A stretch of 64,000 nucleotides of DNA from Mantamonas sphyraenae STR306 (GCA_026936335.1 JAPMXV010000076.1:62001-126000); one strand, 5' to 3'; numbered from the stretch's first letter, positions 2,015 to 49,552 are shown. Translations and numbers: made by a program. The notes: generated by a model not told the origin, from the letters alone.

Positions 2015-3511
2015 ATGAGTGAAGAACTGAGCAATGAGGAATGGATAGAGATACTGCATGGCGGTGATGAGCAAGCAATCAGTGAAGCCCTGGCAAGTGC
2101 TGGCAAAGTAAGTGTGGTGGATTTGATGGGCATCCCTTCCGGGGCCAGTTCTTGAGTGGCAGTAGACTGGGAAACTGACAGCACATTGCAGGAGCTGGAC
2201 CTCGAGGACATCATGATCGGTGTCGAAGGGGCAGCTGCGTTGGGCACAGCACTGGCACAGAACAGCACATTGCAGGAACTTAACCTCAAGGAGAACCAGA
2301 TCGGGAACGCAGGGGCAATTGCATTGGGAACGGGACTGGCACAGAACAACACCTTGCAGGTGCTGCTGCTCGGACGCAACAAGATCGGCGACGAAGGTGC
2401 AGCTGCACTAGGCACAGTACTGGCACAGAGCAGCTCATTGCTGTGGCTGGACCTCAATGACAACCAGATTGGGGACGAAGGCGCAGCCGCGTTGGGCACA
2501 GGACTGGTACAGAACAGCAAATTGAAGGAGCTGGTGCTCAGACGCAACAATATCGGGAACGCAGGGGCAGCTGCGTTGGCCACAGGACTGGCACAGAACA
2601 GAACATTGCAGGGGCTGGTGCTCGGACCCAACAGCATCGGCGACAAAGGGGCAGCTGCGCTAGGCAGAGTACTGGCACAGAACAGCTCATTGCTGTGGCT
2701 GGACCTCTGGAGCAACCAGATTGGTGACGAAGGAGCAGCTGCGTTGGGCACAGGACTGGTACAGAACAGCACATTGCAGGAGCTGTGGCTCGGTGGCAAC
2801 CAGGTCGGGGACAAAGGAACAGCTGCGCTGGCCTCCAATCTGGCACAGAACTGCACGTTGCAGAAGCTGGGCCTCGAGACCAACGAGATCGGCGACGAAG
2901 GGGCAGCTGCGCTGGGTCAAGGACTGGCACAGAACAGCTCATTGCAGAAGCTGGACCTCAGAGGCAACCAGATTGGGGACGAAGGGGCAGCTGCGTTGGT
3001 TCAGGGACTGGCACAGAACAGAACATTGCAGGAATTGCGGATTTCTTTCTTGATCCCATCTCTGACAAGCAACAATCTGGCTCGCAATACCAAAAAGGCA
3101 TTTGTCTTTGCTGACTCTGTCTGCGGTGGTGATTTGGTGACCATGCAAGAACTCCTTGCATGGGGCGTCCACGTTGATGTGCTGGTGGGCGAACGTGCAG
3201 CCACCCCGTTGCTGCTCGCTGTTGAAGCATTTCAAGAAAAAGCCGCGAGAGTCTTGTTGGAGCATGGTGCCACTTTGACCCCTGATGTCAGGGAGTGGAT
3301 GGACAAAGTGGGCTGGTCACCCCAGTGGCACTTTCTTTGGAGCCCACAGCTGGACAAGCAAATGGAGACGGCCATGGTGATGAACATGGAGGAGCGGGAA
3401 GTGATGTTTGGCGCAGGGAGCATGGCAGAGTACGAGCCCACGGCTGAGTGGTGCACCCAGCCAGACGAGGTGTTATCGAGGGTCATGAGCTGGCTCAGCG
3501 CGACTGCCTGA
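2015..3511 (+). CDS. LRR (RI/NLRC3-like, 10 x 28 aa) + ankyrin repeat protein with C-terminal F-box-like motif; exons 2015-2107 and 2192-3511
   Basis: Repeats LxxLxLxxNxIGDxGAAALxxxLxxN; ankyrin TPLLLAVEAFQEKAARVLLEHGA. The in-frame TGA at 2153-2155 lies in a predicted 84-nt phase-0 intron (GTAAGT 2108, CTGAC ~2175, CAG 2191). Exon 1 is homologous to exon 1 of the paralog at 37519. Confidence 0.85.
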
Positions 3512-8602: not shown

Positions 8603-11600
8603 ATGAGCACAAAGGAAGACAGCGGTGCGCTGTGTCGGCGGTTGTTGGACTGTGAGGGCGAGGATGACCAGAGGAAGGCGTTGAAAGAGTGTGGGTTCCA
8701 CAAGAAGGTCATCGATGCCTTGTTGGAAGAGAATGCGTACGGAGTGGCACTGGTGGAGCTTTATCAGACGGAGGACGAGTGGGTGAAATTGCTGGATGAA
8801 GCTGGGATCGAGCGGGAAGTGCGAAGATGGCAGCGGCAGATCAAGCTTTGGGAGACGTTTATTCTGGACTGCGAGACCAAGGCAGGCATGGCGGTGGTGG
8901 AAGACGGGGGAGGTGAAGAGAAGGAGGAGGCTGGTAAGTGAGAGGAGAGAGGGGGTTTGGGGGGTGGAAAGGTTGGAGGAGGCGCTGACACCTGCCCGCG
9001 TGCTTGAGCAGAAAGGGCGTCCAGCTCGTCATCGGCAGGGAGTGTCATGGGCATCATGGACTATTCACGTGTGATGCAGATGAGTGTGGTGCGTGGAGGG
9101 GATGTGTCGTCGGCAGGTTCGTCGAGTGGAGGAGGGGCGAAAGGGAAAGGTGTCGTTGTGAAGGAAGGGCAGATTGTGCCACACAAGCGAAACTCGCGGG
9201 AGAGGTGTGGATGGGACAAGGGCGGGATGAGCGATGTGCGTGTGCTGCTGCTGGGTTCGGATGGACAGGCACGAGGAAAGGTCAAGATAAGCTGTGCAGA
9301 GGAGCAGAGGGCGGTGGAAGCAGCGCGACGAGTGGGCGGCTTGCTGACGAGTGCTGTGGGGGCGGCTGAGCAGGTGGACTTTGTGGCGGAGATTCGTTCA
9401 TTGAAGGCACCGATGGTACACATCATGACACACATGGGGGTGGCAGTGGTGGAGGGAGAGGATGCCTCTGTGACGAGAAAGACGCTTGTGCACTCGCTGC
9501 GAGAAGCAAGTCCCGTGGCGGTGTTTTTGAACGGATGCAGCAGTGCAGAGATGGCCATGGAGATCAATGACCATGTGCCACTGGTGATTGGGTACACCGA
9601 GGCAGTGGACGATCATGCGGCTTTGGACATGGCCAAGGTGTGGTACGAGAACATTGGGAGTGGAGAGACGGTGGAAGAGGCGTTCCGGGCTATGGTGGAA
9701 GCAGGAGGGGAGAAGGAAGGGCCGAAAGCACTGTTGTGTCATTGGCAGGGCATGGAAGACACAGTGTTGGTCAACGCGAGTGGAAAGAAGGCACAGGATG
9801 GGTTCTCCAGGAGACGTGTGGACAATCTGGGCAAAGCACGAGAGCTTGTGCGACGAGAGGAGGTGCTAAGGGAGCTGGAGGAGGCAGAAGGGGTGGTGGT
9901 GGTGTGTGGAGCGAGGGGCATGGGCAAGACAAGCGTGGTAGAGATGCATGCGCAGGAAGTGAAGGAGAAGGGTGGCACGGATGTGGTGTGGTGGTGTGCA
10001 GGACAGAGCAGAGAGGCTTTGGTGAGTGACTTGCTGCAGCTGGGTGTGGCATTGGGCGTGTTCACGGATGCTGGAGTTCAGTCGGCTGAGAAGGAGGAGG
10101 TGCGAGAGGGAATGGCAAAGAGGGTGATGCAGGCGTTGGATGGACAGCGATGGATGTTGGTGATGGACGGGGTGGAGGCATGGGGGGATGTCGAGGCGTT
10201 TGTGCACGGAGGAGGTCGTGTGGTGATGACGACATGGCGGGATGGGGTTTGGGACAAGCGGGTGGTGGACGCTGTGGTGAGGGTGGATGTAATGCGGAAG
10301 GATGAGGTGGATGCCGTGTTTGCGAGTGAGGGTGTGGTGGTGGATGGGGAAGAGGAGGAGAAGGCATATGGGGAACTGAAGAGGCTGCTGGATGGGATGG
10401 CATTGGCTGTGCGACAGGCAGCGGCAGTGATTGGAGAGTGGGGAGAGGGTGGATCGGTGCAGAAGTACGTGAAGAGACTGGGACGCAGTCTGAGACAGCT
10501 GGGGAAGGAGGTGGAGGGCGATGTGTACAGTGGAACAGCGCTGAGTGTGTGGCAGATTGCGATGGAAGAGGCATCGGAGAGGAACGAACATGCAGCAAGG
10601 TTGATGTTGTGCATGGCGCTGTTGGATGGGCAGGATCTGCCAATGAGGCTGCTGGTGACGCTGATGGAGCAGATTGCGGGTGTGGAGGACAGGGAAGAGG
10701 CAGAGGAAATGGCAGAGGAGGCATTGGAGGCACTGCAGAGAGTGTCGCTGGTGCAGAGGATGGTGGAAAGAGGGAGTGGGTGGAAGGTGCATGGGCTGAC
10801 GCAGATGATGGCAAGGGGAGGACAAGCGGTGGTGTTGGATGGAGAGGAAGGCGTAGGGAGGCTGGTGGGTGTGAAGCATGTGTTCATGATGATGCGGAGG
10901 GAGTTTGCTTTCGATTGGAGTGAGTCGCTTGACGAACTTGGATGGCACAGGAGAATGCTAGTGCATGGTGAATCTGTGTGGAATGCATGTCACGAGGTGT
11001 GCGCACTCAGAAGAAATGTGGAGGACATGTGCTGGGTGGGACGGAATGTGGCGCATGTGCATGACTGGATGGGCTCGTATGGAGAGGCGGGAAAGTGGGT
11101 AGAAGAGGTGATGAGAATGCAGAGGGAAGCTGGAGAAGAAGAGGAAGAGACCGAAGGATGGGCGAGAAGTTTGTTCCTGGCTGCAGGGATTGCAGATGCG
11201 AAGGGAGAGTACGATCGTGCACTGGAGCTGCATGAGCAGGCACTGGGAATTAGGCGACGGGTGCATGGTGGGGATGAGCACCCGGATGTGGCATCGAGCA
11301 TCCACAACATGGCTGGGGTGTACGATGACAAGGGAGAGTATGATCGGGCACTGGAGCTGTATGAGCAGGCACTGGATATCAGGCGACGGGTGCATGGTGG
11401 GGATGAGCACCCGGATGTGGCATCGAGTATCAACAACATGGCTCGGGTGTACGATGCCAAGGGAGAGTACGATCGGGCACTGGAGCTGCATGAGAAGGCA
11501 CTGGGGATCTGGCGCCGGGTGCATGATGGGATGAGCACCCGGATGTGGCCACGAGCATCGCCAATATGGCTGGGGTGTACCAGGCCAAGGGAGAGTACGA

Positions 11601-29656: not shown

Positions 29657-30958
29657 ATGCACAGGATGGCACACACACACCCACTTGCCCTGTTGTCGCT
29701 GGTGGCAATCATCATCCTTTTGCCCATGGCCAGCGGGTATGGCACAGTGTCAACCATCAGCATGGTGGCCTCTGCCAACCATGCGGCAGGAGCTCCCGAC
29801 GGGCCCAGCAACGGCGAGGCTGTGGTGGACCTCACCCAGCACAAGGACACGTTCCCGGAAATGTTTTCGCATGATTCGTTGCTGCGCACGGCAATCCTTG
29901 TCGACGTACGTCCCGTGCCGTTCAACGCAAGCATTGGGCAGTACGACGCCTTGCTGAGGCTGGGCGTTCCGTTTTGGCGAGAAAAAGCTGCAGGAGGAGG
30001 GAGCACGGCACTGTGCAATGCCGCCACCACCTCTGAATACGGCACTCTCACACACGTGGGCAACATCCAATACGCAAACGGGGAGAGTGGAGCGGTGTCG
30101 CCGTGTGTGGGCAACAACAGCGTGCTGCCCACGGAACTGGTGGTGCCCATTTGGTTCAAGTTGAAGGACACCCCTGCGGGCACGGTGGTGCATGGGTTCC
30201 AGCTGAACATGACCACCATGCCCACACAGCAAGTGACCGTCGATGGGCCCCCACTCATCACCGACCTGCCCTGGAACGACAACGACAACGACAACGATGA
30301 CGATGACGAGGGTGGTGGCCCCACCACCACCATCTCCCCCCGGGTGCTGCTTGCTCCACGCGTGCTCTTTGCACAGCTTCACACACCCAAAGTGCCCACT
30401 GCATTTGACATTGCCATTGCCGGCCAAGACGGTGCCAAACACTTTGTGAAACAGGTCACGGCAGCCGTGTTTGCCGACGTGTCGAACACAGGCACCACGT
30501 ACGGGGTGTCCACGGGAAAGGTGCTGGCCATCACGGCTCCATTTGGACCCGTGGTATCCAGCAACGACACCCTGGGTCCCTTTTTGTCTCATGTGGCCGC
30601 GGAGGTTGGACAGCCTGCGTATGTGCAGCTGATGTTGGAGTCGGGCACACCGTGGTCTGTGGACGGGTACAGCAGGGCGATTGCCGTGACGCTGGTGTCC
30701 AGGCAGGTGGGACGGTGTTTCAAGGGATGCAACGACATCGCTGGGGCTCGGTGTGACATGTACGCAGGTGGTGTGTGCAACTGTGGTCCCACAATGCAGT
30801 GGGATGTGGCAGAGAACGGCGACCGTGTGTGTGTGAAGCTGCCGAAGCTGGCTTTCAATGTGGCTGTACGCCCGTGTATCACCAAGCTGTGCAGATGTTG
30901 GCTGACCGATGGGAGCAGCTGGTGGCTGCAGGCGACGCCATTGATCTCGGGTACATGA
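29657..30958 (+). CDS. Secreted protein with Cys-rich EGF-like C-terminal motif; last ~35 codons come from an out-of-frame BTB-gene fragment
   Basis: Signal PLALLSLVAIIILLPMASG; CFKGCNDIAGARCDMYAGGVCNCGPTMQW...VCV. Confidence 0.65.
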   Translation: MHRMAHTHPLALLSLVAIIILLPMASGYGTVSTISMVASANHAAGAPDGPSNGEAVVDLTQHKDTFPEMFSHDSLLRTAILVDVRPVPFNASIGQYDALLRLGVPFWREKAAGGGSTALCNAATTSEYGTLTHVGNIQYANGESGAVSPCVGNNSVLPTELVVPIWFKLKDTPAGTVVHGFQLNMTTMPTQQVTVDGPPLITDLPWNDNDNDNDDDDEGGGPTTTISPRVLLAPRVLFAQLHTPKVPTAFDIAIAGQDGAKHFVKQVTAAVFADVSNTGTTYGVSTGKVLAITAPFGPVVSSNDTLGPFLSHVAAEVGQPAYVQLMLESGTPWSVDGYSRAIAVTLVSRQVGRCFKGCNDIAGARCDMYAGGVCNCGPTMQWDVAENGDRVCVKLPKLAFNVAVRPCITKLCRCWLTDGSSWWLQATPLISGT

Positions 30959-31106
30959 ACGCCGGTGTGTTTTGTACCTTGGTCAGCCAAGCAGTCGCAC
31001 AGAACGACCAACGCCTGGACGAGGGTCTGAGTGAGGTGGTGGGACGCTACCTGCGCACAGACAACATCATTGAACTCTGCGACGACGACGACGTCGGCGA
31101 GTACCT
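30852..31106 (+). pseudogene. ~255-bp duplicated internal fragment of the BTB gene (40960-41211)
   Basis: ctttcaatgtggctgtacgcccgtgtatcacca...gacgtc(ggc)gagtacct is nearly identical to 40960-41211; encodes FQCGCTPVYHQAVQMLADRWEQ... Confidence 0.9.
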
Positions 31107-31394
31107 CTGCAGGATTTGAATGACCGTCGTGCCACACCTGATGCCTTTCACGTGGACCTGTGTTGTGAAGACGGATAGTACTCGAGACTCGTGAACAAAA
31201 GGCGCAATGGCCATCCCGACGTGATGTCAACAGGGACAGAAAAAAAAAACGCTCCTACCACAAGGTATGTGATGTCAACCGCGCTCTAAGGCACCCAATA
31301 CAAAAGGAAAGAATGAACAAGTTTGACCAAGTCCTTGACTTAGTGAAGAGCAGTACGTGAATGTTAATTGATTTTTCAGCAATGGCACTAACCC

Positions 31395-34218: not shown

Positions 34219-37200
34219 TCACTGCTTCTCCCCCATCAACTGCTGCACCAGTGCTTCCAGTGCACTGATCCGCTTCTCAAATGCAATTTCCGTACGCCAG
34301 CGACTCAACCGCTGCTCGGTCGTCTCTCCCATCACATTCGCTCCCAGGCCCAGCAGCAGCTCAAACAATCCACGGTCGTCCTCTTCGCCTGCAATCTGCA
34401 ACGGCGTTCTCCCTCCCACCTGCGCATTCACGTCCACAAACTCCGCGCACACTTCAACCAGCGCGTGCGCTGCTTCGCCACCACGCAGCACATGCTCCCA
34501 CACCGTCCGTGGCGCGTCTCCACCCACCATCTCCACATCATCCACCGAGTACCCTGCCTCCAACAGCACCCTCAACACGGCGACCTGTGCCGTCGTCGTC
34601 TCCACAGCCACGTGCACCAGTTGCTGTCCTGCGGCGTTTGTCGTCTCGTCAGTCCTCGCCGCACCCGCAAGCGCCACCTGCAAACACTCACTGTGCCCTC
34701 GACGCACCAACACATGCAAGCACGTCTCATCACCTCCTGCGCTCTCCTCCTGCGGCGCCCACCACTGCCATCCCGTCGCTGCACGTGCCAGCACACGCAC
34801 CGCTGCTTCATCCCCCTCGCTGCACGCTTGCCACGCCCACCTCTTTGCCGCCTCACTCACATCGACGCCCGTCATCTCTGCTGCCATGTCCATGCCCTCG
34901 GCAACCACCAGGCCCACAGCACGCCCACATCCACGCGCATCCACACGCTCCGACGTCAGCACCACTTGCACAAACCTACCCGCTCCCACATGCTTCACCA
35001 ACTCCACCAACAGTCTATCATCCACCGTCTCCTCCATCACCGCTGCTTCCAACACCGTGCCCAGTTCTCCGTTCTTCCCCACGCTTGCCAACGGGGTCCC
35101 ACCAAAGCGCAGCACCGTCTGCACCACCTCCACGTCGCCTCGACTCACTGCCACCTCCACGATCGTCTGTCCTTCCCCGTCGCGTACTTCCTGCACCTCT
35201 GCCACCGTCGGTGCCTCCATCAACCCAAACAGCCTGCTCAGATCTTCTGCACACAGCGACGCCGTCATCGCGTGTGCTACCAACTGTGACGACGTGCGCG
35301 AGTCCGTGGACGATGATGAAGACGACGACGACTGCGTTCCCTCTTCAACAACGCTACCCATCGCAACCACGGGTGTGTCGTGTGCGCTACGGACAAGCAA
35401 CGCCAGCGCGTCGAGTTGCGACAAGATCTCAGTCGTCAGCAAAGCACGCGCACCGTCGCCCAGCCGCTCTGCACGCTCACGTGGCTCCCCAGCACAGGCA
35501 CACCCAAGTGCACCAAGCCGTTCCACAAGCCACGCCACGGTTTCCGCCTTTGACACGTGCTGCACCGCCTCATGCGCCACCGCCACCAGCTCTAGCCACA
35601 CACACATCTCTCCCACACACGCGTTGGCCGCCTGTGCTGCCACACGCGCCGCACTCAACACGTCAAGCATCGCTCGCTCTCCGTTCAGTAGCACGCCCCA
35701 TTGCACACCCGTGTATCGCAACACCTTGCCACCTCCACCCGCACCTTGCTCTTCCCCATTACTCTCACTCACCCCGTCCTTGCCTGGAGCGTCCCATTTC
35801 GCCGCCGCGTCGTCATCGGCCGCACGTCCACGCACCGACACCGTCCGACCCATCAGCGTTTCCTTCCCCAGCCGCGGCGTCTCTGCCAGCAGCTTCTCCA
35901 CAGCCTCCACCTCCCCTGCCTCTATCGCATCGATCAGTGCTTGTTGCACCTTGCGTTCAAGATACATCTCGTCTTCCAGCTGCGGATACTCGCCCAGCAG
36001 CGCTTCGATCTCGTTGCGTGTTCGCCGATCCGCAATCATCACGTCCTTGTTGTCCACCGTCCCATTCGTACACGGATCCGTGTCGTGCTCCAACAGCCAC
36101 TCCTCCAAACATTCTCGCTCATACGCATGCGACATCTCCCCTTCCACAACCGTCACGCACGGGTCTTGCATCAGCTGCGCACTGATTGGACACACCAGTC
36201 CTTCGGGGATCTCCACCACCGCAACCTTCTTCGACGCCTCCATCGCCTCCACTGACGCACGCACCATGGCCAGCATCTCGTCCACTTCTTCAGAAGGCAT
36301 CGCCGTTCCCTGCAACACCGTCGATCGCCACGCCTCTCTTGCTCCATCCGCCTCGCGTTCCACCAGGCGGAGTACTTGCTGAAGAGGTAGTGACCGCGCC
36401 ACGCCACCATCTCCAAGCAAATGCAGCACGCCGTTGTTCTCAGCCATCTCGTATGGGGTGAAACGCGCAGACTTGGGTCTCGTGTGCGGGTTCGCCCCAT
36501 GAGACAACAAGAACGCACACATCGCCTCGCTGTTGCTCTCCACAGCCACGTGCAGTGCTGTTGTCTCCCCATCGGGCCATGTGTCCACGGGCACACCCCA
36601 ATCCAGTAGAGATTTCATCGTCGCTGTGTCTTGGTCGCGGGCCGCTTGAACAAACGCCTCCGCTCGTGATTTGTTGCGTAAGATCGACTGGTCAGCCCCA
36701 GTGATTCCATCAACACGCCAAATCGATCGGTTGACCTCTAGCGCACGGGCCACTGCTGCGGCACCTTGGTCGCCGATCTTGTTGTTGTAGAGGTACAGCG
36801 TCTGCAGCGTGCTATTCTTCTCAAGCGCAGTGGCCACTGCTGCGGCACCTTGGTCGCCGATCTGGTTGCCGCGGAGGTGCAGCGTCTGCAGCGTGCCATT
36901 GTCCTCAAGCGCACTGGCCACTGCTGCCGCACCTTGGTGGCCGATCTGGTTGTACCCGAGGTTCAGCGTCTGCAGCGTGGTGTTGACCTCAAGCGCACGG
37001 GCCACTGCTGCAGCACCTTGGTCGCCGATCTGGTTGTTGTTGAGGTCCAGCGTCTGCAGCGTGCTATTCTTCTCAAGCGCACGGGCCACTGCTTCGGCAC
37101 CATGGTGGCCGATCTGGTTGAACCCGAGGTTCAGCCTCTGCAGCGTGCTGTTGACCTCAAGCGCACGGGCCACTGCTGCGGCACCTTGGCCGCCGATCTT

Positions 37201-37519
37201 GTTGTTGTAGAGGTACAGCGTCTGCAGCGTGCTGTTGCCATCAAGCGCACGGGCCACTGCTGCGGCACCTTGGTCGCCGATCTGCTTGGCGTAGAGGTTC
37301 AGCGTCTGCAGCGAGTGAAATCCAGAGAAACGCATCTCCCCGCGCGTGTGAGCATAATGCACGGAACCAAACATCCCTAGGTCGTCCAAACCATCCCCAA
37401 CATACGCTACCATGCGCTTTCATTGCCTCGATCACCTTGTCAATGTCAATATCGCCCGTGAGAAGCGATTTCCACTCAGCCACCGAGAGGGCTTTTTCGC
37501 TCGCTTTTCTGCACACCAT
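34219..37519 (-). CDS. LRR (7 x 28 aa) - ankyrin - U-box - ankyrin E3 ligase-like protein; exons 37519-37406 and 37305-34219
   Basis: LRRs TLxLxxNxIGDQGAAAVARALExNSTLQ; ankyrins GETTALHVAV, DETCLHVLV, GRTPLQIA; U-box IPEGLVCPISAQLMQDPC...YERECLEEWL...DPCTN. A 100-nt phase-0 intron (GTATGT..CTCAC..CTGCAG) reconciles ORFs 37241-37600 and 34219-37413. Confidence 0.88.
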
Positions 37520-39698: not shown

Positions 39699-40133
39699 TC
39701 ACAACCGTGGGCTTTGCAGACACAAAAGGCTCCATGTGTGTATGGCAACAACATGGCACGCACAGCGTGTCACATTGGGCTTGGCAGGCCACACCACGCG
39801 CAGGTAACCCAGCGCATCCGTGCGTGCGTCCCATTCGTACCCCTTCGCCTGACCCAACAGTTGCTGCAGTTGCACCAGAGCCAGTCGATCCCGTGCGAGC
39901 ATGTCCACCTTGCTTCTGGGGCTCTCATCCTCCTCCTCCTCCTCCTCCTCCTCCGTCATTCTGTCCGACAGCCCCGGCGTAGTCTGCCACACAAACGCAC
40001 TCAGGGCCTCGACCACGCTGCCATGGACCACATTCCCGTCCTCGTAGTCAAAGCGGGCATCGGTGGCAAGCAGCTTTAGGGGCAAGGGATTTCTGCGACC
40101 GGCGTGGCGTTGCTTTGCTTGGCTTTCCTGCAT
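39699..40133 (-). CDS. Hypothetical protein with poly-Glu tract, divergent from the BTB gene
   Basis: ORF 39699-40208 from MQESQ has protein-like composition; no recognised motif. Confidence 0.35.
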   Translation of the reverse strand: MQESQAKQRHAGRRNPLPLKLLATDARFDYEDGNVVHGSVVEALSAFVWQTTPGLSDRMTEEEEEEEEDESPRSKVDMLARDRLALVQLQQLLGQAKGYEWDARTDALGYLRVVWPAKPNVTRCACHVVAIHTWSLLCLQSPRL

Positions 40134-40309
40134 CAGCAATGGGAAATGGGGACAATCGGCCTGTGTGATCCGTAGAGACACATATGGATGTGTGTCGTAG
40201 TACAACACCGAGGGTGTTTGTCGTTGCTTGCATGTGTGTGCGCTCGACTCGCTGGCGACGGGAGTGACTTTGGTCGTTGGTGCGCATGTTCACACAGATA
40301 AAACATCGG

Positions 40310-43300
40310 ATGTCGACACGAGACGGAAAGGCGGGCACAGCAGCAGGCAACGAAGCGTCGTTGAAGTACGGCGGCATGGAACTGGACACCTCGGGGGCGA
40401 ATCATTACCTGCACGGACAGCGCGAAAACGAGTACGGACCTGCTTCGCAGTTCAGCGCCAATCAGGATCCCATGCAGCAGCAGTTCCACGACTGGTTTGT
40501 CAACCAGTGGGACTGCGACGTGACGCTCAAGCTTTGCATCGCCGATGAAGGTGAGTGCGACGGGTGCGACGGGAGGGCTTTTTGTGCGTTGTCAGGAACA
40601 CAATGGCTCACCGTTGGCACAGGCAAAGACGACGAACAAACACAGGTGGCCGCTTCCCTGGGATCACATTCCCTGTTCCTGCGCATGTTCTCGGGCTACT
40701 TTCGTGACATGCCCTACGAGCGGGAGGATATGGTCGAGCAGCCTGTGTTGGCGCGGTGTGAGGAACACGTGCAGGCGTTTCGCGCCGCCATCGAGTGGTG
40801 CTACACCCAAAGGATCCCAACAGGCGACCCTGCGCTGTGCTACTCACTGCTGTGTGTGGCCAGTGAGTGGCGCATGGCCAAATTGACCGAGCAGGTGCTG
40901 CACTGGGTGCAAAGTGCACAGCTCTCTGCTGCACAGGTCGCTCGGATGTGCAAACGTGCCTTTCAATGTGGCTGTACGCCCGTGTATCACCAGGCTGTGC
41001 AGATGTTGGCTGACCGATGGGAACAGGTGGTGGCGGCAGGCGACGCCATTGATCTCGGGTACATGAACGCGGGTGTGTTTTGTACCTTGGTCAGCCAAGC
41101 AGTCGCACAGAACGACAACCGCCTGGACGAGGGTCTGGGTGAGGTGGTGGGACGCTACCTGCGCACAGACAACATCGTGGAGCTATGCGACGAGGACGAC
41201 GTCGAGTACCTGACTCTGCTGATGGGGCAAGTGGAGCACAACGAAGAAGCTGTGCTGTTGCGTCTGTGTCTGGCAACGCAGGCCGATCCACAGTCATTGT
41301 GCATGCAGATGGCGGGAAAACTCCAGACTCTGGTGGACGAGGACAAGATGGATATGAACGCCCTGCCTGTCGACGTCGTGGTGCAGGTGTTGTCGCAGGA
41401 CGAAATGACGGTGAATAGTGAAGACGTCGTGCTTGGATTGGTGCGTCAGTACGTGGCACAGCATGACGGCGACGGGGAGGAGCAAGGGTGGGAGAAACGT
41501 GTGTTCGGATGTGTGCGTTGCGGCCTGCTCTCGGCCGATGTCCTCAAAGCGGCAAAGAAGGAGATTCGGCAGATGCTGGGCGCAGACGTGTACGGAGACG
41601 CACTCGAGGACTGTATGTCAGTCCGCGACGGGGGCGAACCAGAGAATTGTACAAAGCGCATGGCACCGGCAAAGGAGATCGCAGTCAAGCCGGCGATGCC
41701 CCCAACCACGCAGTCGACCGTGAATCCAAACATGGGCTTGAGTAAGTCGGGTGATGAAGCAGGTGATGAGGGAGCGAGCTGGGAGGAGCGCATTCGTGGA
41801 GCAGTAGGCGGCAGGAAGGACTGACACAGAGGACGCAGAACGTAAGTCGGGTGATGAAGCAGGTGATGAGGGAGCGAGCTGGGAGGAGCGCATTCGTGGA
41901 GCAGTAGGCGGCAGGAAGGACTGACACAGAGGACGCAGGGAGTAAGTCGGGTGATGAAGCAGGTGATTAGGGGGCGAGCTGGGGAGAAGCGCATTCGTGG
42001 AGCAGTGGGTGGCAGGAAGGACTGACACAGAGGACGCAGAACGTAAGTCGGGTGATGAAGCAGGTGATGAGGGAGCGAGCTGGGAGGAGCGCATTCGTGG
42101 AGCAGTAGGCGGCAGGAAGGACTGACACAGAGGACGCAGGGAGTAAGTCGGGTGATGAAGCAGGTGATGAGGGAGCGAGCTGGGGAGAAGCGTAGTCGTG
42201 GAGCAGTGCGTGGCAGGAAGGACTGACACAGAGGACGCAGGGGGTAAGTCGGGTGATGAAGCAGGTGATGAGGGGGCGAGCTGGGGAGGAGCGCATTCGT
42301 GGAGCAGTAGGTGGTAGGAAGGACTGACACAGAGGACGCAGGGAGTAAGTCGGGTGATGAAGCAGGTGATGAGGGGGCGAGCTGGGGAGGAGCGCATTCG
42401 TGGAGCAGTGGGTGGTAGGAAGGACTGACACAGAGGACGCAGAACGTAAGTCGGGTGATGAAGCAGGTGATGAGGGGGCGAGCTGGGGAGGAGCGCATTC
42501 GTGGAGCAGTGGGTGGTAGGAAGGACTGACACAGAGGACGCAGAACGTAAGTCGGGTGATGGAGCAGGCGATGAGGGGGCGAGCTGGGGAGAAGCGTAGT
42601 CGTGGAGCAGTAGGCGGCAGGAAGGACTGACACAGAGGACGCAGGGAGTAAGTCGGGTGATGAAGCAGGTGATGAGGGGGGGAGCTGGGGAGAAGCGTAG
42701 TCGTGGAGCAGTAGGCGGCAGGAAGGACTGACACAGAGGACGCAGAACGTAAGTCGGGTGATGAAGCAGGTGATGAGGGGGCGAGCTTGGGAGAAGCGCA
42801 TTCGTGGAGCAGTGGGTGGCAGGAAGGACTGACACAGAGGACGCAGTTGGTAAGTGGGGTGATGAAGCAGGTGACGAGGGGGCGAGCTGGGGAGGAGCGT
42901 AGTCGTGGAGCAGTGGGTGGTAGGAAGGACTGACACAGAGGACGCAGCTCGTAAGTGGGGTGATGAAGCAGGTGATGAGGGGGCGAGCTGGGGAGAAGCG
43001 TAGTCGTGGAGCAGTGGGTGGCAGGAAGGACTGACACAGAGGACGCAGGGAGTAAGTCGGGTGATGAAGCAGGTGATGAGGGGGCGAGCTGGGAGAAGCG
43101 TAGTCGTGGAGCAGTGGGTGGCAGGAAGGACTGACACAGAGGACGCAGAACGTAAGTCGGGTGATGAAGCAGGTGATGAGGGGGGAGCTGGGGAGAAGCG
43201 TAGTCGTGGAGCAGTAGGCGGCAGGAAGGACTGACACAGAGGACGCAGTTGGTAAGTGGGGTGATGAAGCAGGTGATGAGGGGGCGAGCTGGGGAGAAGC

Positions 43301-44586
43301 GCATTCGTGGAGCAGTAGGCGGCAGGAAGGACTGACACAGGGGGTGCAGCTCGTAAGTGGGGTGATGAAGCAGGTGATGAGGGAGCGAGCTGGGGAGAAG
43401 CGTAGTCGTGGAGCAGTAGGCGGCAGGAAGGACTGACACAGAGGACGCAGTTGGTAAGTGGGGTGATGAAGCAGGTGATGAGGGGGCGAGCTGGGGAGAA
43501 GCGTAGTCGTGGAGCAGTAGGCGGCAGGAAGGACTGACACAGGGGGTGCAGCTCGTAAGTGGGGTGATGAAGCAGGTGATGAGGGGGCGAGCTGGGGAGT
43601 AGCGTAGTCGTGGAGCAGTAGGCGGCAGGAAGGACTGACACAGAGGACGCAGTTGGTAAGTGGGGTGATGAAGCAGGTGATGAGGGGGCGAGCTGGGGAG
43701 AAGCGTAGTCGTGGAGCAGTAGGCGGCAGAAAGGACTGACACAGAGGACGCAGCTCGTAAGTGGGGTGATGAAGCAGGCGATTAGGGGGCGAGCTGGGGA
43801 GGAGCGCATTCGTGGAGCAGTGGGTGGTAGGAAGGACTGACACAGAGGACGCAGAACGTAAGTCGGGTGATGAAGCAGGTGATGAGGGGGCGAGCTGGGG
43901 AGGAGCGCATTCGTGGAGCAGTGGGTGGCAGGAAGGACTGACACAGAGGACGCAGAACGTAAGTCGGGTGATGGAGCAGGCGATGAGGGGGCGAGCTGGG
44001 GAGAAGCGTAGTCGTGGAGCAGTAGGCGGCAGGAAGGACTGACACAGAGGACGCAGGGAGTAAGTCGGGTGATGAAGCAGGTGATGAGGGGGGGAGCTGG
44101 GGAGAAGCGTAGTCGTGGAGCAGTAGGTGGTAGGAAGTACTGACACAGAGGACGCAGGGGGTAAGTCGGGTGATGAAGCAGGTGATGAGGGGGGGAGCTG
44201 GGGAGAAGCGTAGTCGTGGAGCAGTGGGTGGCAGGAAGGACTGACACAGAGGACGCAGGGGGTAAATCGGGTGATGAAGCAGGCAATGAGGGGGTGAGCT
44301 GGGGAGAAGCGTAGTCGTGGCGCAGCAGGTGGTATGAAGGACTGACAGAGAGGGCTTAGCCAATGTTGGCTACTCCTCAAAGGGACAAGTGCTCAGCCAA
44401 GGTACACAAGTGAGTGTGGCACCATCTTACGCCGCTGGGGACACAGTCACGATTGACTTTTCTCACAGGAACCAAACGGTGACTTTCTACGTCAACCACA
44501 AAGAACAAGGTGCGGTGGAGGTTGGAGCAAAGTCTCCCCTCTTTCCAGTGATATCTGCAAAGCACGCGACCGCTTCGCTTTGTTGA
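40310..44586 (+). CDS. BTB/POZ - BACK - SPRY-like protein (putative cullin-3 adaptor); exons 40310-40550, 40623-41741, 25 three-nucleotide microexons, 44360-44586
   Basis: BTB: CDVTL...SHSLFLRMFSGYFRDM...AIEWCYT. BACK: LPVDVVVQVLSQDEMTVNSEDVVL...CVRCGLL. Last exon GYSSKG...GDTVTIDFS..TVTFYVNHKEQG...LFPVIS is SPRY-like. First donor (41742) and last acceptor (44359) are both phase 1. Confidence 0.8.
41742..44359 (+). repeat. Tandem array of 26 near-identical 97-98-nt spliceosomal introns separated by 3-nt microexons
   Basis: Each unit reads GTAAGT(c/g)gggtgatgaagcagg...ggACTGACacagaggacgCAG + NNN. NNN in order: AAC GGA AAC GGA GGG GGA AAC AAC GGA AAC TTG CTC GGA AAC TTG CTC TTG CTC TTG CTC AAC AAC GGA GGG GGG. 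The last unit is slightly divergent (GTAAAT..TAG). Confidence 0.88.
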
Positions 44587-45273
44587 AGCCCTGGCACACA
44601 TGCGCATCCATACACATGCGATCTTTCTCACCATGCTGTCCACGTGGACGAAACGCCGTAGAAATCCGTTGGCCAACGACGTCCGAAAAGATGAATCCTC
44701 TCTGGGACGTTAAGGCAGCGTGCGTGAACTGGTGAGGACCAGCAAGTGAGTTTGACTGTGGAGTCGGATTACAGCGAGCGTGTTTTTATTGCTCAGCAAC
44801 AAAGGCCAAGCCAATGTCGTGTGGCAGTGGTGCACTCATGTCCTGATGACCGATGTCTTGCTGATGGGTCAAATCCTTGGCACTTGCGGTCGGGTGCAAA
44901 CGCATCCACTCGGGATCGCTGTACAAAAGTGTGAAGGGCGTAGTTTGTGTTCCAGTTCATCAAGGTGTTTGCACATGTGTTTGCCATGGGTTTGCTGGGA
45001 GTAGCCGTGTCACTGTTCCTACACGGGGCCGAAGTTTCTTTTGATGCGGAGCCCTGGATTGCCACATTCGTCACACTCCATGCGGCTATTTGCCCACTCA
45101 TACACGCAGTCCAGTCTGTGGCAGGTCCTCAGAGAAGGATTCATTGATCGTGTAAACAGGCAACGGCAATGAGTCGTCCGAGTGGTCGCTTCTCCCATCC
45201 GCGTCCCACACCTGCTCACGCGTTGGTTGCGGTGCTTTGAGAAAAAGACGACGCGGGACAAAGGCCGCCCGCC

Positions 45274-47409: not shown

Positions 47410-49403
47410 CTATTCCTCCACGCAGCTGATGCTGATTTGGTCTCCCTGACTGAAAAGCGTTGCTGCCGGGTACCAGTCTTCTTCAGAGTTGATGCTCCGC
47501 AACCGGTAGCGAACCTGTTTGGAGGTCACCGTCAACGTGATCACAAGCTGACCATGTGCGTCGCAAATCAACGTCACTTCGTCTCCCGGATTCAGCGGCT
47601 CCACGTCGCGCACCATCCTGCCACTCTGCCAAAGTTCCCCCCGTGTGTTCACGCCTATGCCTGCCTTCCCCCCAGAGAATTCGTCTGTCGGATGTGTTAG
47701 TGCGTGCCAAACAAACCTCCACTGTCTCTTCCGAACAACTCACACAAAGGGGTTCCTTGGGATGGAAAGCTGCCACGGACGACGCCGATCGTGTTTGCGA
47801 TCTCAAAGTGTTCACACTTGAACTTGCACGTCATCCCGACTCGCAGCGGTTGTTTTGCGACCCACAGCAAAGGTGTCTCTGACTGCGATGTAACTTTTGC
47901 GCCGTCATTGCGAAATTCCCCAAGGTGGTGAGGGACTCGCAATAAATCAACTTGCATCCCTGCGCTCAAGGATGCACGCCACTGGTTGAATACAGGTTGC
48001 TGGCCGTCTTGGATCAGTGTGCGATCCTCCAAGGCGTTCATGAGCGTCTCCATCCGCACGTATCTCGTGTCCCAGCGACCTTTCACCTTGAAGGATCGCA
48101 GCACATCCCCCGAAAGCAGCCCAAAGCGAACACATTCGAGCACTCGCCTTCTAACGTCATCACATTGACACGAGTTGTAGCCTTGGGCCATGGCCAACGC
48201 CTCATCCTCCGACTCAACATTCAGGATATCCGAGCCGAGAATGACTTGAACGACGCTGCATGGCCAATCTGTGGGGATCTGATTGTCCAACAGGTATGCA
48301 TGAGCAGCCACGTTCGTACACAGTGTCACGAGCAGGTCGTCATCCAAGTGGTCATTCTGTTGCACCTCGAGGGCGAAACAAAGCATGTCCACATGGAAGG
48401 TGTGATCCAAACTGGACATGAGAGCTTCAATGAAACGAAAATGGAGCTCCGTGCATCGAGAGACCACACTTGGGTGAGAGACATACCCCATCAGAACATG
48501 AGCAAGGACGGACTTCGCTCTGTTAGTGTGTGGGCAGTTGATTCTCATCTTCCTGAACAAGTCGAATGTGTCCATCCACTTCGAGCCGGGGAAAAGCACT
48601 TCGACAACCAGCGCACAGAACACATCCGGGGTCATGAAGCTCAAATCGAACCATGCTTCGTGCACACTCTCGAACATGTTCTCCTTCTGCGCAAGTTGGC
48701 GTACGGCATAGTGGTAGATGTTCTCTCCAGCATCTTGACAATAGCTCGCCACGCGACACATCTCCATGAGATCCTCGACAGAGTGCTCTGCATCCAACCA
48801 AATCATCACGTGTTTGGTCAACGCCGGCATCCGCCAGTACTGAGCGACAAAGAGGAGAGAAAAGCAAAGGCCCGGATTGTGCACGGGCAGAGGGTGTCCG
48901 TAGCACCAAGCCACTGCCTGTCTCATGGCACGCATCACAGCCACACTGGTGCTTTCCGCCGACACCACAATCTTTGGCTCGCCTTCCACGTCCAAACAGT
49001 CCCTCCAGAACCCGCTGTGCAGACACAGGAATAGAGAATGGGCGTCCACGTGTGTGTCCTCGTTTCCATGCGTCGAAGCGTCTGTGTGCGTGAGGGTGTC
49101 AGCGCCCGAGTTTTCGTTGTGTGTGGATTCCATTTCACGCACGCTTTTTTGGTACTCACCGGCGTTGCTGAGTCCCTCAAAGACGATGGTCAGGTCGGTG
49201 CGGAACCCCTGCAGAAACAGGTCGTTGTGTAAATGCGCCAGAGCAGGGCGGTGCGGCAACTGGCCCTGGCTGTTCGTGCTCTGCGGAGTTGCCGGCCCGT
49301 ACGCCTTGTCGTCCCGATCTATGGACAGGTACGCATCCGGTGTCTCGTCCAGCAACTGAGGAATGTCGTTGCGGTTGTCGGCCACGAAGCGCATGAATGT
49401 CAT
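47410..49403 (-). CDS. BTB/POZ - BACK - SPRY-like protein, paralog of 40310-44586; predicted introns 49159-49082 and 47743-47685
   Basis: TDLTIVF...AHSLFLCLHSGFWRD...AVAWCYG; ILGSDILNVESEDEAL...CVRFGLL; TIGVV, GVNTRGEL, PGDEVTL, WYPAATL. Both introns have GTGAGT, CTRAC and CAG, are phase 1, and keep or restore the frame. Confidence 0.85.
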
Positions 49404-49552
49404 ACTCCCCCCGGGTGCTTTTCGGTGTGTGTGGCCCAGGGCACCGTGTTGGCGCTGAGTGGTTTCTATCGCATACATTTTGTCTCTCACACATCCGAAG
49501 GAAATGGGCCAACCAAGACTGTGCTTCACCGAAATCCAGGTGAAGTTCTAAC

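Follow-up and report, generated by a model that had tools for sequence, protein, structure and literature searches.

Gene content and features of the locus

The window is a stretch of 64,000 nt from Mantamonas sphyraenae STR306 (JAPMXV010000076.1:62001-126000), a deep-branching protist of a lineage near the base of Amorphea, and positions are counted from its first letter. A predicted gene on the plus strand encodes BTB and BACK domains and part of a SPRY domain, and a tandem array of introns and 3-nt spacers lies between its second and last coding exons (Table 1).

Table 1. Features of the BTB-BACK-SPRY gene and of the intron array
Feature	Position	Strand	Details
Coding exon 1, putative ATG start	40376-40550	+	In frame with exon 2; residues 3-53 match paralogs; RNA contig from 40457
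Ordinary GT-AG intron, 72 nt	40551-40622	+	Spliced joint in run X3 only
Exon 2: BTB, BACK and short Pro/Thr-rich tail	40623-41741	+	Pfam; ends in phase 1; RNA contig identical up to 41741
Tandem array of 25 three-nt exons between 26 purine-rich introns (97 or 98 nt) that form no stable fold	41742-44359	+	Period 100-101; 26 units of 100 or 101 nt
Span of 3-nt exons 1-10	41839-42748	+	First 41839-41841, tenth 42746-42748; in RNA contig 17 they follow exon 2 immediately, joined in genomic order
Span of 3-nt exons 11-19	42847-43655	+	Probable, from the 57-letter overhang (19 x 3); exons 15-18 or 17-20 joined between introns
Span of 3-nt exons 20-25	43754-44261	+	Intact splice signals; exons 4-5 or 23-24 give the GGA+GGG join in RNA
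Intron 26, diverged edge unit	44262-44359	+	12 differences from consensus, versus 2-8 in other units
Last coding exon (exon 3): SPRY C-terminal half, stop codon 44584-44586	44360-44586	+	Pfam SPRY positions 41-110 of 121, E 3.4e-6, above cut-off

Pfam searches with exon 2 returned BACK at E 1.4e-7 and BTB at E 6e-4 (20.4 bits, just below the cut-off of 20.5). The final 442 nt of this exon are single-copy in the genome. Part of it (40960-41176) shares about 84 % amino acid identity with window positions ~30830-31116 and with G000:C77:102991-103275, and these two places score identically to each other; the shared piece would be a captured fragment or a recent conversion. The exon beyond the array had been described in an earlier note on this DNA as an orphan SPRY-like exon. 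Its relationship to SPRY stands, and the description is refined in that the exon holds the C-terminal half of the domain and the N-terminal half is missing from the gene; an HMM of the paralog N-half found no match over 40300-45200. The gene therefore has the BTB and BACK domains of a BTB-BACK-SPRY Cullin-3 adaptor and an incomplete SPRY domain. Structure prediction for exon 3 by itself gave no informative fold (pLDDT 44). Searches with exon 2 and exon 3 found no homologues outside this genome. The product is probably a Cullin-3 substrate adaptor, the role that BTB-BACK proteins generally have.

The predicted protein has 531 residues when all 25 of the 3-nt exons are included and 506 when 41741 is joined directly to 44360. 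These exons sum to 75 of about 1593 coding nt (~5 % of the CDS). Full inclusion adds a basic stretch of 26 residues, KRKRRGKQRKLARKLALALAQQRRGA, identical to the peptide read earlier, in which 11 of the 26 are Lys or Arg. The stretch begins like a nuclear localisation signal and occupies the place that the SPRY N-half has in the paralogs.

Elsewhere in the window, a 144-bp unit repeated 25.8 times with 99 % match (19163-22878) has open frames on both strands and appears to be a young coding macrosatellite. A 129-bp x 13 array (11195-12890, TPR-like by eye), 84-bp LRR arrays (2178-3033 and 36731-37313) and a minus-strand ORF with LRR, ankyrin and U-box domains (34219-37413) are also present.

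Structure of the array

The earlier note had described the array as introns with constant signals separated by spacers of fixed length, and this description was largely borne out. The spacer is exactly 3 nt in 25/25 cases, and 1-nt indels are confined to two G runs, both of them intronic. The A of the branch-point motif CTGAC sits 14 nt before the acceptor end in all 26 introns, where the earlier reading had placed it at about 14 nt. The spacer is also the most variable part of the unit, with a pairwise difference of 0.70 per site against a mean of 0.058 per site among introns 1-25, when unit 26 is set apart as a diverged edge unit. One detail was amended: GTAAGT donors and CAG acceptors, attributed to every unit, are present in introns 1-25, but the last intron has the donor GTAAAT and the acceptor TAG. 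Donor, branch point and AG are intact in 26/26 introns, which lack a pyrimidine tract and have the branch point close to the AG. No stable fold was predicted for the array intron (z-scores 0.1-1.8). Five triplets make up the 25 spacers, namely AAC (8), GGA (6), TTG (4), CTC (4) and GGG (3). Long minus-strand ORFs that run across the array are explained by the purine-rich plus strand.

Translation agreed with the earlier statements that both outer junctions, 41741 and 44360, are phase 1 and bring BTB-BACK in frame with the SPRY-like exon, and that the unspliced ORF from exon 2 ends within the first branch point (stop at 41824). All internal junctions are likewise phase 1. Because of this, and because none of the pieces ends in T, the frame is kept and no stop arises whichever spacers are joined in their order; 15 codons are possible. 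The phase also qualifies the claim that each intron-plus-codon unit adds one amino acid. Addition by whole units is supported (see below), but each codon of the insert straddles two exons, and one exon does not equal one residue.

Splicing of the 3-nt exons into RNA

The published data for M. sphyraenae (PMC10492846) comprise a FALCON assembly of 25.06 Mb in 78 contigs with 59 % GC, together with one RNA run and two DNA runs from Illumina sequencing. The window has a G+C content of about 58 %. The upstream flank is present in three runs from a single study (X1, X2 and X3), and reads were compared over 39960-41841, with exon 3 outside this span. The 72-nt intron is absent from X3, which is therefore RNA, and is retained in X1 and X2, which are therefore DNA.

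Contig 17 of X3 (1270 nt, depth 48) has no differences from exons 1 and 2 up to 41741 and then continues for 57 letters. The first 30 of these are spacers 1-10 in genomic order, for which the chance is about 1e-6 given the five-triplet alphabet; letters 31-57 are not displayed. Two other forms in X3 have spacers joined to each other between introns, four in one case (depth 6.9) and two, GGA+GGG, in the other (depth 4.0). In the DNA runs no joined spacers were found, only single spacers between introns, and the end of exon 2 continues into the intron. The spacers are thus internal exons of <=27 nt with canonical flanking splice sites that are joined in spliced RNA and not in DNA, exons 1-10 as displayed and exons 11-19 by length. 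We conclude that the 3-nt spacers are spliced into RNA as exons in genomic order; this is seen directly for exons 1-10, and exons 11-19 fit by length. At least ten consecutive 3-nt exons are present in RNA, and probably 19-25. The earlier proposal that ordered splicing spells out the peptide holds to this extent, as far as the contig reaches, which is short of exon 3.

Summed over 26 copies, the intron-containing contigs of X3 have a depth of ~20, whereas the spliced form reaches 48. Splicing thus seems efficient, as far as contig depth, a rough guide, can tell. The RNA evidence consists of one run from one culture in the form of contigs, which carry neither read counts nor strand, omit rare forms and would hide 3-nt skips. 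When contig formation was simulated, a single full-length form ran on into exon 3; a contig ending after 57 nt would be consistent with exon 20 being skipped, with intron 20 being retained or with an intermediate beginning at intron 10.

The same simulation bears on whether the array is simply one 2618-nt intron (41742-44359) with unused spacers. Direct skipping is in frame, and the 'mirage' repeats of amphioxus do bear unused splice signals (PMC3087553). An abundant direct skip would, however, end a contig at 41741; no loose end is listed there in X3, and contig 17 has exons 1-10 in order. An inert intronic minisatellite is thus exceedingly improbable, and direct skipping is refuted as the main form, although it may occur as a minor isoform. 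Outcomes that the earlier note had listed as contrary to its reading were transcripts that end before or within the array, that retain it, or that always skip directly from 41741 to 44360; neither a transcript end at 41741, nor dominant retention, nor the direct skip was found as the main form.

Tandem arrays are hard to assemble, and the search for further copies covered the primary assembly rather than alternate haplotigs; the array could in principle be misassembled, or the RNA contig could come from an intronless copy elsewhere. In X1 the junction depth per assembled copy was 33 for GGA, 34 for TTG, 33 for the variant-acceptor CTC and 24 for GGG (rough values), and single-spacer depths in X1 and X2 fit the assembled copy numbers, so the DNA runs back the assembly of the array. 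The end of exon 2 is single-copy, so the RNA contig is not accounted for by an intronless duplicate within the primary assembly, and the joined form is absent from the DNA runs. An artefact of either kind can hardly account for these data. A GGC spacer that is absent from the assembly was recorded among the array junctions of X1 (depth 10.6) and is either a sequencing error or a minor unit variant.

Occurrence in the genome

All 26 matches to the array unit in the 25,061,354 bases (78 contigs) scanned are within the array. Pattern scans of the 25 Mb for a second array of consecutive 3-nt spacers gave scattered matches at or below the control level, though such scans could miss arrays with other branch-point spellings or intron lengths. 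As the pattern rises above the control nowhere else, the array is not a product of chance. A strict scan of C76:131-161 kb, a candidate acidic-microexon stretch, gave no match.

Two kinds of candidate were rejected. Two single 3-nt matches that looked promising, on C10 and C54, seem to represent the downstream end of a TnpB/Fanzor-like element, and a 51-bp tandem repeat with CAG-NNN-GTGAG at G000:C22:98007-98272 (-) has no branch-point motif and is probably a coding repeat rather than an intron array. The region G000:C10 ~89018-94216 (L075:19-5217, +) contains a 1732-aa ORF in which Pfam identifies a Cas12f1-like TNB zinc finger close to the C-terminus (E 3.4e-7), and judging from this domain it is likely a TnpB/Fanzor-type element. 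The C-terminus and downstream end at G000:C54 ~290100-290500 (minus) are similar to it.

Confinement of the unit to one place also bears on a mobile origin. Introners are similar introns dispersed over unrelated loci, and here 26/26 matches are inside the array. Repeated entry of an introner-like intron into an older coding sequence (the SPRY N-half) at intervals of 3 nt would be in keeping with the first residues of the insert, which briefly resemble the paralog motif around KKKLRSGQR. Yet there are only five triplets, they occur in repeated blocks linked to variants of the flanking introns, and, compared exon by exon, the spacers fit the paralog DNA no better than in shuffled order (p 0.5-0.97). 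Repeated insertion is accordingly a highly improbable source of the array.

Paralogs and origin of the array

The genome has at least 12 BTB-BACK paralogs. The eight that were examined have a full SPRY domain split by a single phase-1 intron of 58-60 nt. Its donor and branch point are of the kind found in the array, and it lies about four codons from the position of the array end. With one short intron at nearly the same place in eight paralogs, the array is the derived state. BTB-BACK-SPRY genes form an expanded family with variable SPRY loops, with members on G000 contigs C24, C29, C34, C51, C69, C73, C75, C76 and C77, and in the C34 copy the 60-nt intron reads through in frame. A second BTB-BACK paralog in the window (47697-49529, -) keeps a stretch like the SPRY N-half and has no array.

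Several features point to amplification of whole units. Units 2 and 4, 7 and 8, and 9 and 23 are identical, TTG-CTC pairs recur, and a G at donor position +7 of the next intron follows TTG or CTC in 8/8 cases and other triplets in 0/17 (Fisher p 9e-7); the diverged edge unit agrees with this. Recombination between units is evident from AAC and GGA, since at ten intron sites both alleles accompany each of these triplets. The introns of units 1 and 2 are identical, yet their spacers differ at 3/3 letters. The minisatellite amplification proposed earlier is therefore upheld by the identical units, with the refinement that units also recombined and did not arise by duplication alone. GGA might derive from the final three letters of exon 2, yet such a match is expected by chance, and this derivation was not adopted.

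Change is concentrated in the spacers, where there are 7 alleles at 3 sites against 23 at 98 sites in the intron, a difference of about tenfold per site. The Poisson p for this excess is about 1e-5 by alleles and about 0.006-0.01 if counted as 4 events. From the sequence pattern, the excess would fit selection for peptide diversity against a homogenising background, but it could also stem from a mutation hot spot at this place or from a small number of old founder exons.

Comparison with known systems

Arabidopsis APC11 has a 1-nt exon (PMC4674806), and plant microexons of 1-15 nt have been described (PMC8831610). Exons of 3 nt are mentioned for RPS24 and MAP4K5. Like the array exons, these single tiny exons are too small for exon definition, and their flanking introns are thought to be removed successively by intron definition. 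They occur alone or as two to three neighbours among unrelated introns, whereas the array has 25 in succession, separated by near-identical introns.

The micro-exon genes (MEGs) of schistosomes (PMC10526429) and the bicycle genes of aphids (10.1101/2021.09.24.461719) share with the array many small, same-phase, frame-symmetric exons in fast-evolving families. MEGs have 10-20 or more short exons, mostly multiples of 3, as does the array with its 25 x 3 nt. Schistosome MEG exons are mostly 15 bp (6-81), lie between introns of 0.1-5 kb and make up most of a secreted protein (PMC10526429). In contrast, the array exons are all 3 nt, account for 75 of ~1593 nt rather than for most of the CDS, are separated by homogenised introns of 97-98 nt instead of long ones, and belong to a single member of an intracellular-type family.

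Spider silk genes (Argiope MaSp2 and flagelliform; PMC9779670) resemble the array in the form of their repeats, with tandem exon-intron units, introns ~94-99 % alike, edge introns set apart, and unequal crossover. The array has the same iterated near-identical introns and diverged edge. Silk exons, though, are whole homogenised protein repeats, while the array exon is of codon length, out of phase and the most variable part of the unit (0.70 per site). By analogy, the array would work as a silk-type exon-intron repeat reduced to the length of one codon. Amphioxus mirage minisatellites (PMC3087553) are likewise built from splice-site sequence and show concerted evolution and diverged edge units. 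They arise from duplication of one exon-intron boundary and are reported to be without effect on the mRNA, from which the repeats are left out, whereas the array unit is a whole working intron and the RNA contig includes its spacers.

Tiny exons, microexon-rich genes and homogenised introns are thus each known, and for their combination no description was found in the literature searched. A run of 3-nt exons was not found in the open-access literature, subscription journals being mostly outside this scope, and within that scope the earlier assertion of no described equivalent stands. As every step uses known machinery, we rate the array as an extreme variant and not as a separate category.

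Proposed mechanism of splicing

We consider it very likely that this is a real, transcribed BTB-BACK-(half)SPRY gene in which the region of one ancestral phase-1 intron became a minisatellite of intron-plus-3-nt units, with each intron removed singly. A 3-nt exon cannot hold factors at both of its ends simultaneously, which excludes exon definition; the same argument has been used for the 1-nt exon of APC11 (PMC4674806). Instead, the strong donor of each 97-98 nt intron, with a branch point 14 nt from the AG, would pair with the nearest acceptor by intron definition, and the neighbouring intron would stand in for exon sequence during removal. Introns would be removed singly and not strictly 5' to 3', inner ones being removable while their outer neighbours remain, and the remaining 3-nt pieces would join in genomic order. 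The internally joined forms in X3 indicate that inner introns can go before outer ones; re-splicing inside skip lariats is a less simple alternative source of these forms. The array may have originated by one duplication of an intron with 3 nt, after which unequal crossover and gene conversion would have multiplied and mixed the units.

Possible roles of the insert

The role of the inserted peptide is the weakest part of this reading. As a guess, somewhat short of an even chance, the insert would be a variable basic linker or a nuclear-localisation-like segment in the probable Cullin-3 adaptor, and selection would maintain diversity among the spacers during homogenisation of the introns.

Close behind this linker or targeting role in likelihood, if on the unlikely side of even, is a neutral by-product of a decaying paralog. 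The array would grow because the paralog, with half of its SPRY domain lost, tolerates any in-frame unit, and the peptide would have no role. The absence of the SPRY N-half, the low complexity of the peptide and a genome without a second array are in keeping with this, and the missing half together with the absence of outside homologues means that the product may belong to a decaying paralog. Against it, splice signals are intact in 26/26 introns, the spacer length is fixed although indels occur elsewhere in the unit, exon 3 retains its frame and SPRY motifs, and neutral homogenisation should have erased the differences among spacers as it has in the introns. This reading is about function only and is compatible with the splicing result.

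Regulated or random skipping, combined with recombination of units, might alternatively yield proteins with differing basic linkers, an idea put forward for the micro-exon genes of schistosomes. In its favour, every subset of the exons keeps the frame and avoids stops (15 codons are possible), the spacers are hypervariable, the gene is a member of an expanded adaptor family, and a contig that breaks off after exactly 19 triplets suggests heterogeneity at an exon boundary. The break is explained equally by splicing intermediates, however; a stop-free alphabet (no triplet ending in T) has a chance of ~1 in 4; and the first 10 exons (19 by length) form one dominant ordered path at depth 48, although assembly into contigs would hide 3-nt skips. 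We regard such combinatorial diversification as unlikely. A comparably doubtful extension is that the array serves as a splice-assembled peptide writer, a minisatellite whose introns are complete in themselves and whose codons each draw on two adjacent 3-nt exons, in which gain, loss, reordering or skipping of units would edit the segment residue by residue with neither frameshift nor stop, and which would have been selected to generate variants.

Implications

As far as the searches reach, this is the most extreme exon-intron architecture with RNA support. It means that the spliceosome can remove an intron that is flanked on each side by three bases and another intron. Questions that the array opens to direct test are how small an exon can be, whether neighbouring spliceosomes clash sterically, in which order introns are removed, and how intron definition works in a lineage near the base of Amorphea. 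It also represents a route by which tandem amplification yields new introns and microexons. Coding sequence of this class would be overlooked where repeats are masked or reads are mapped with ordinary tools.
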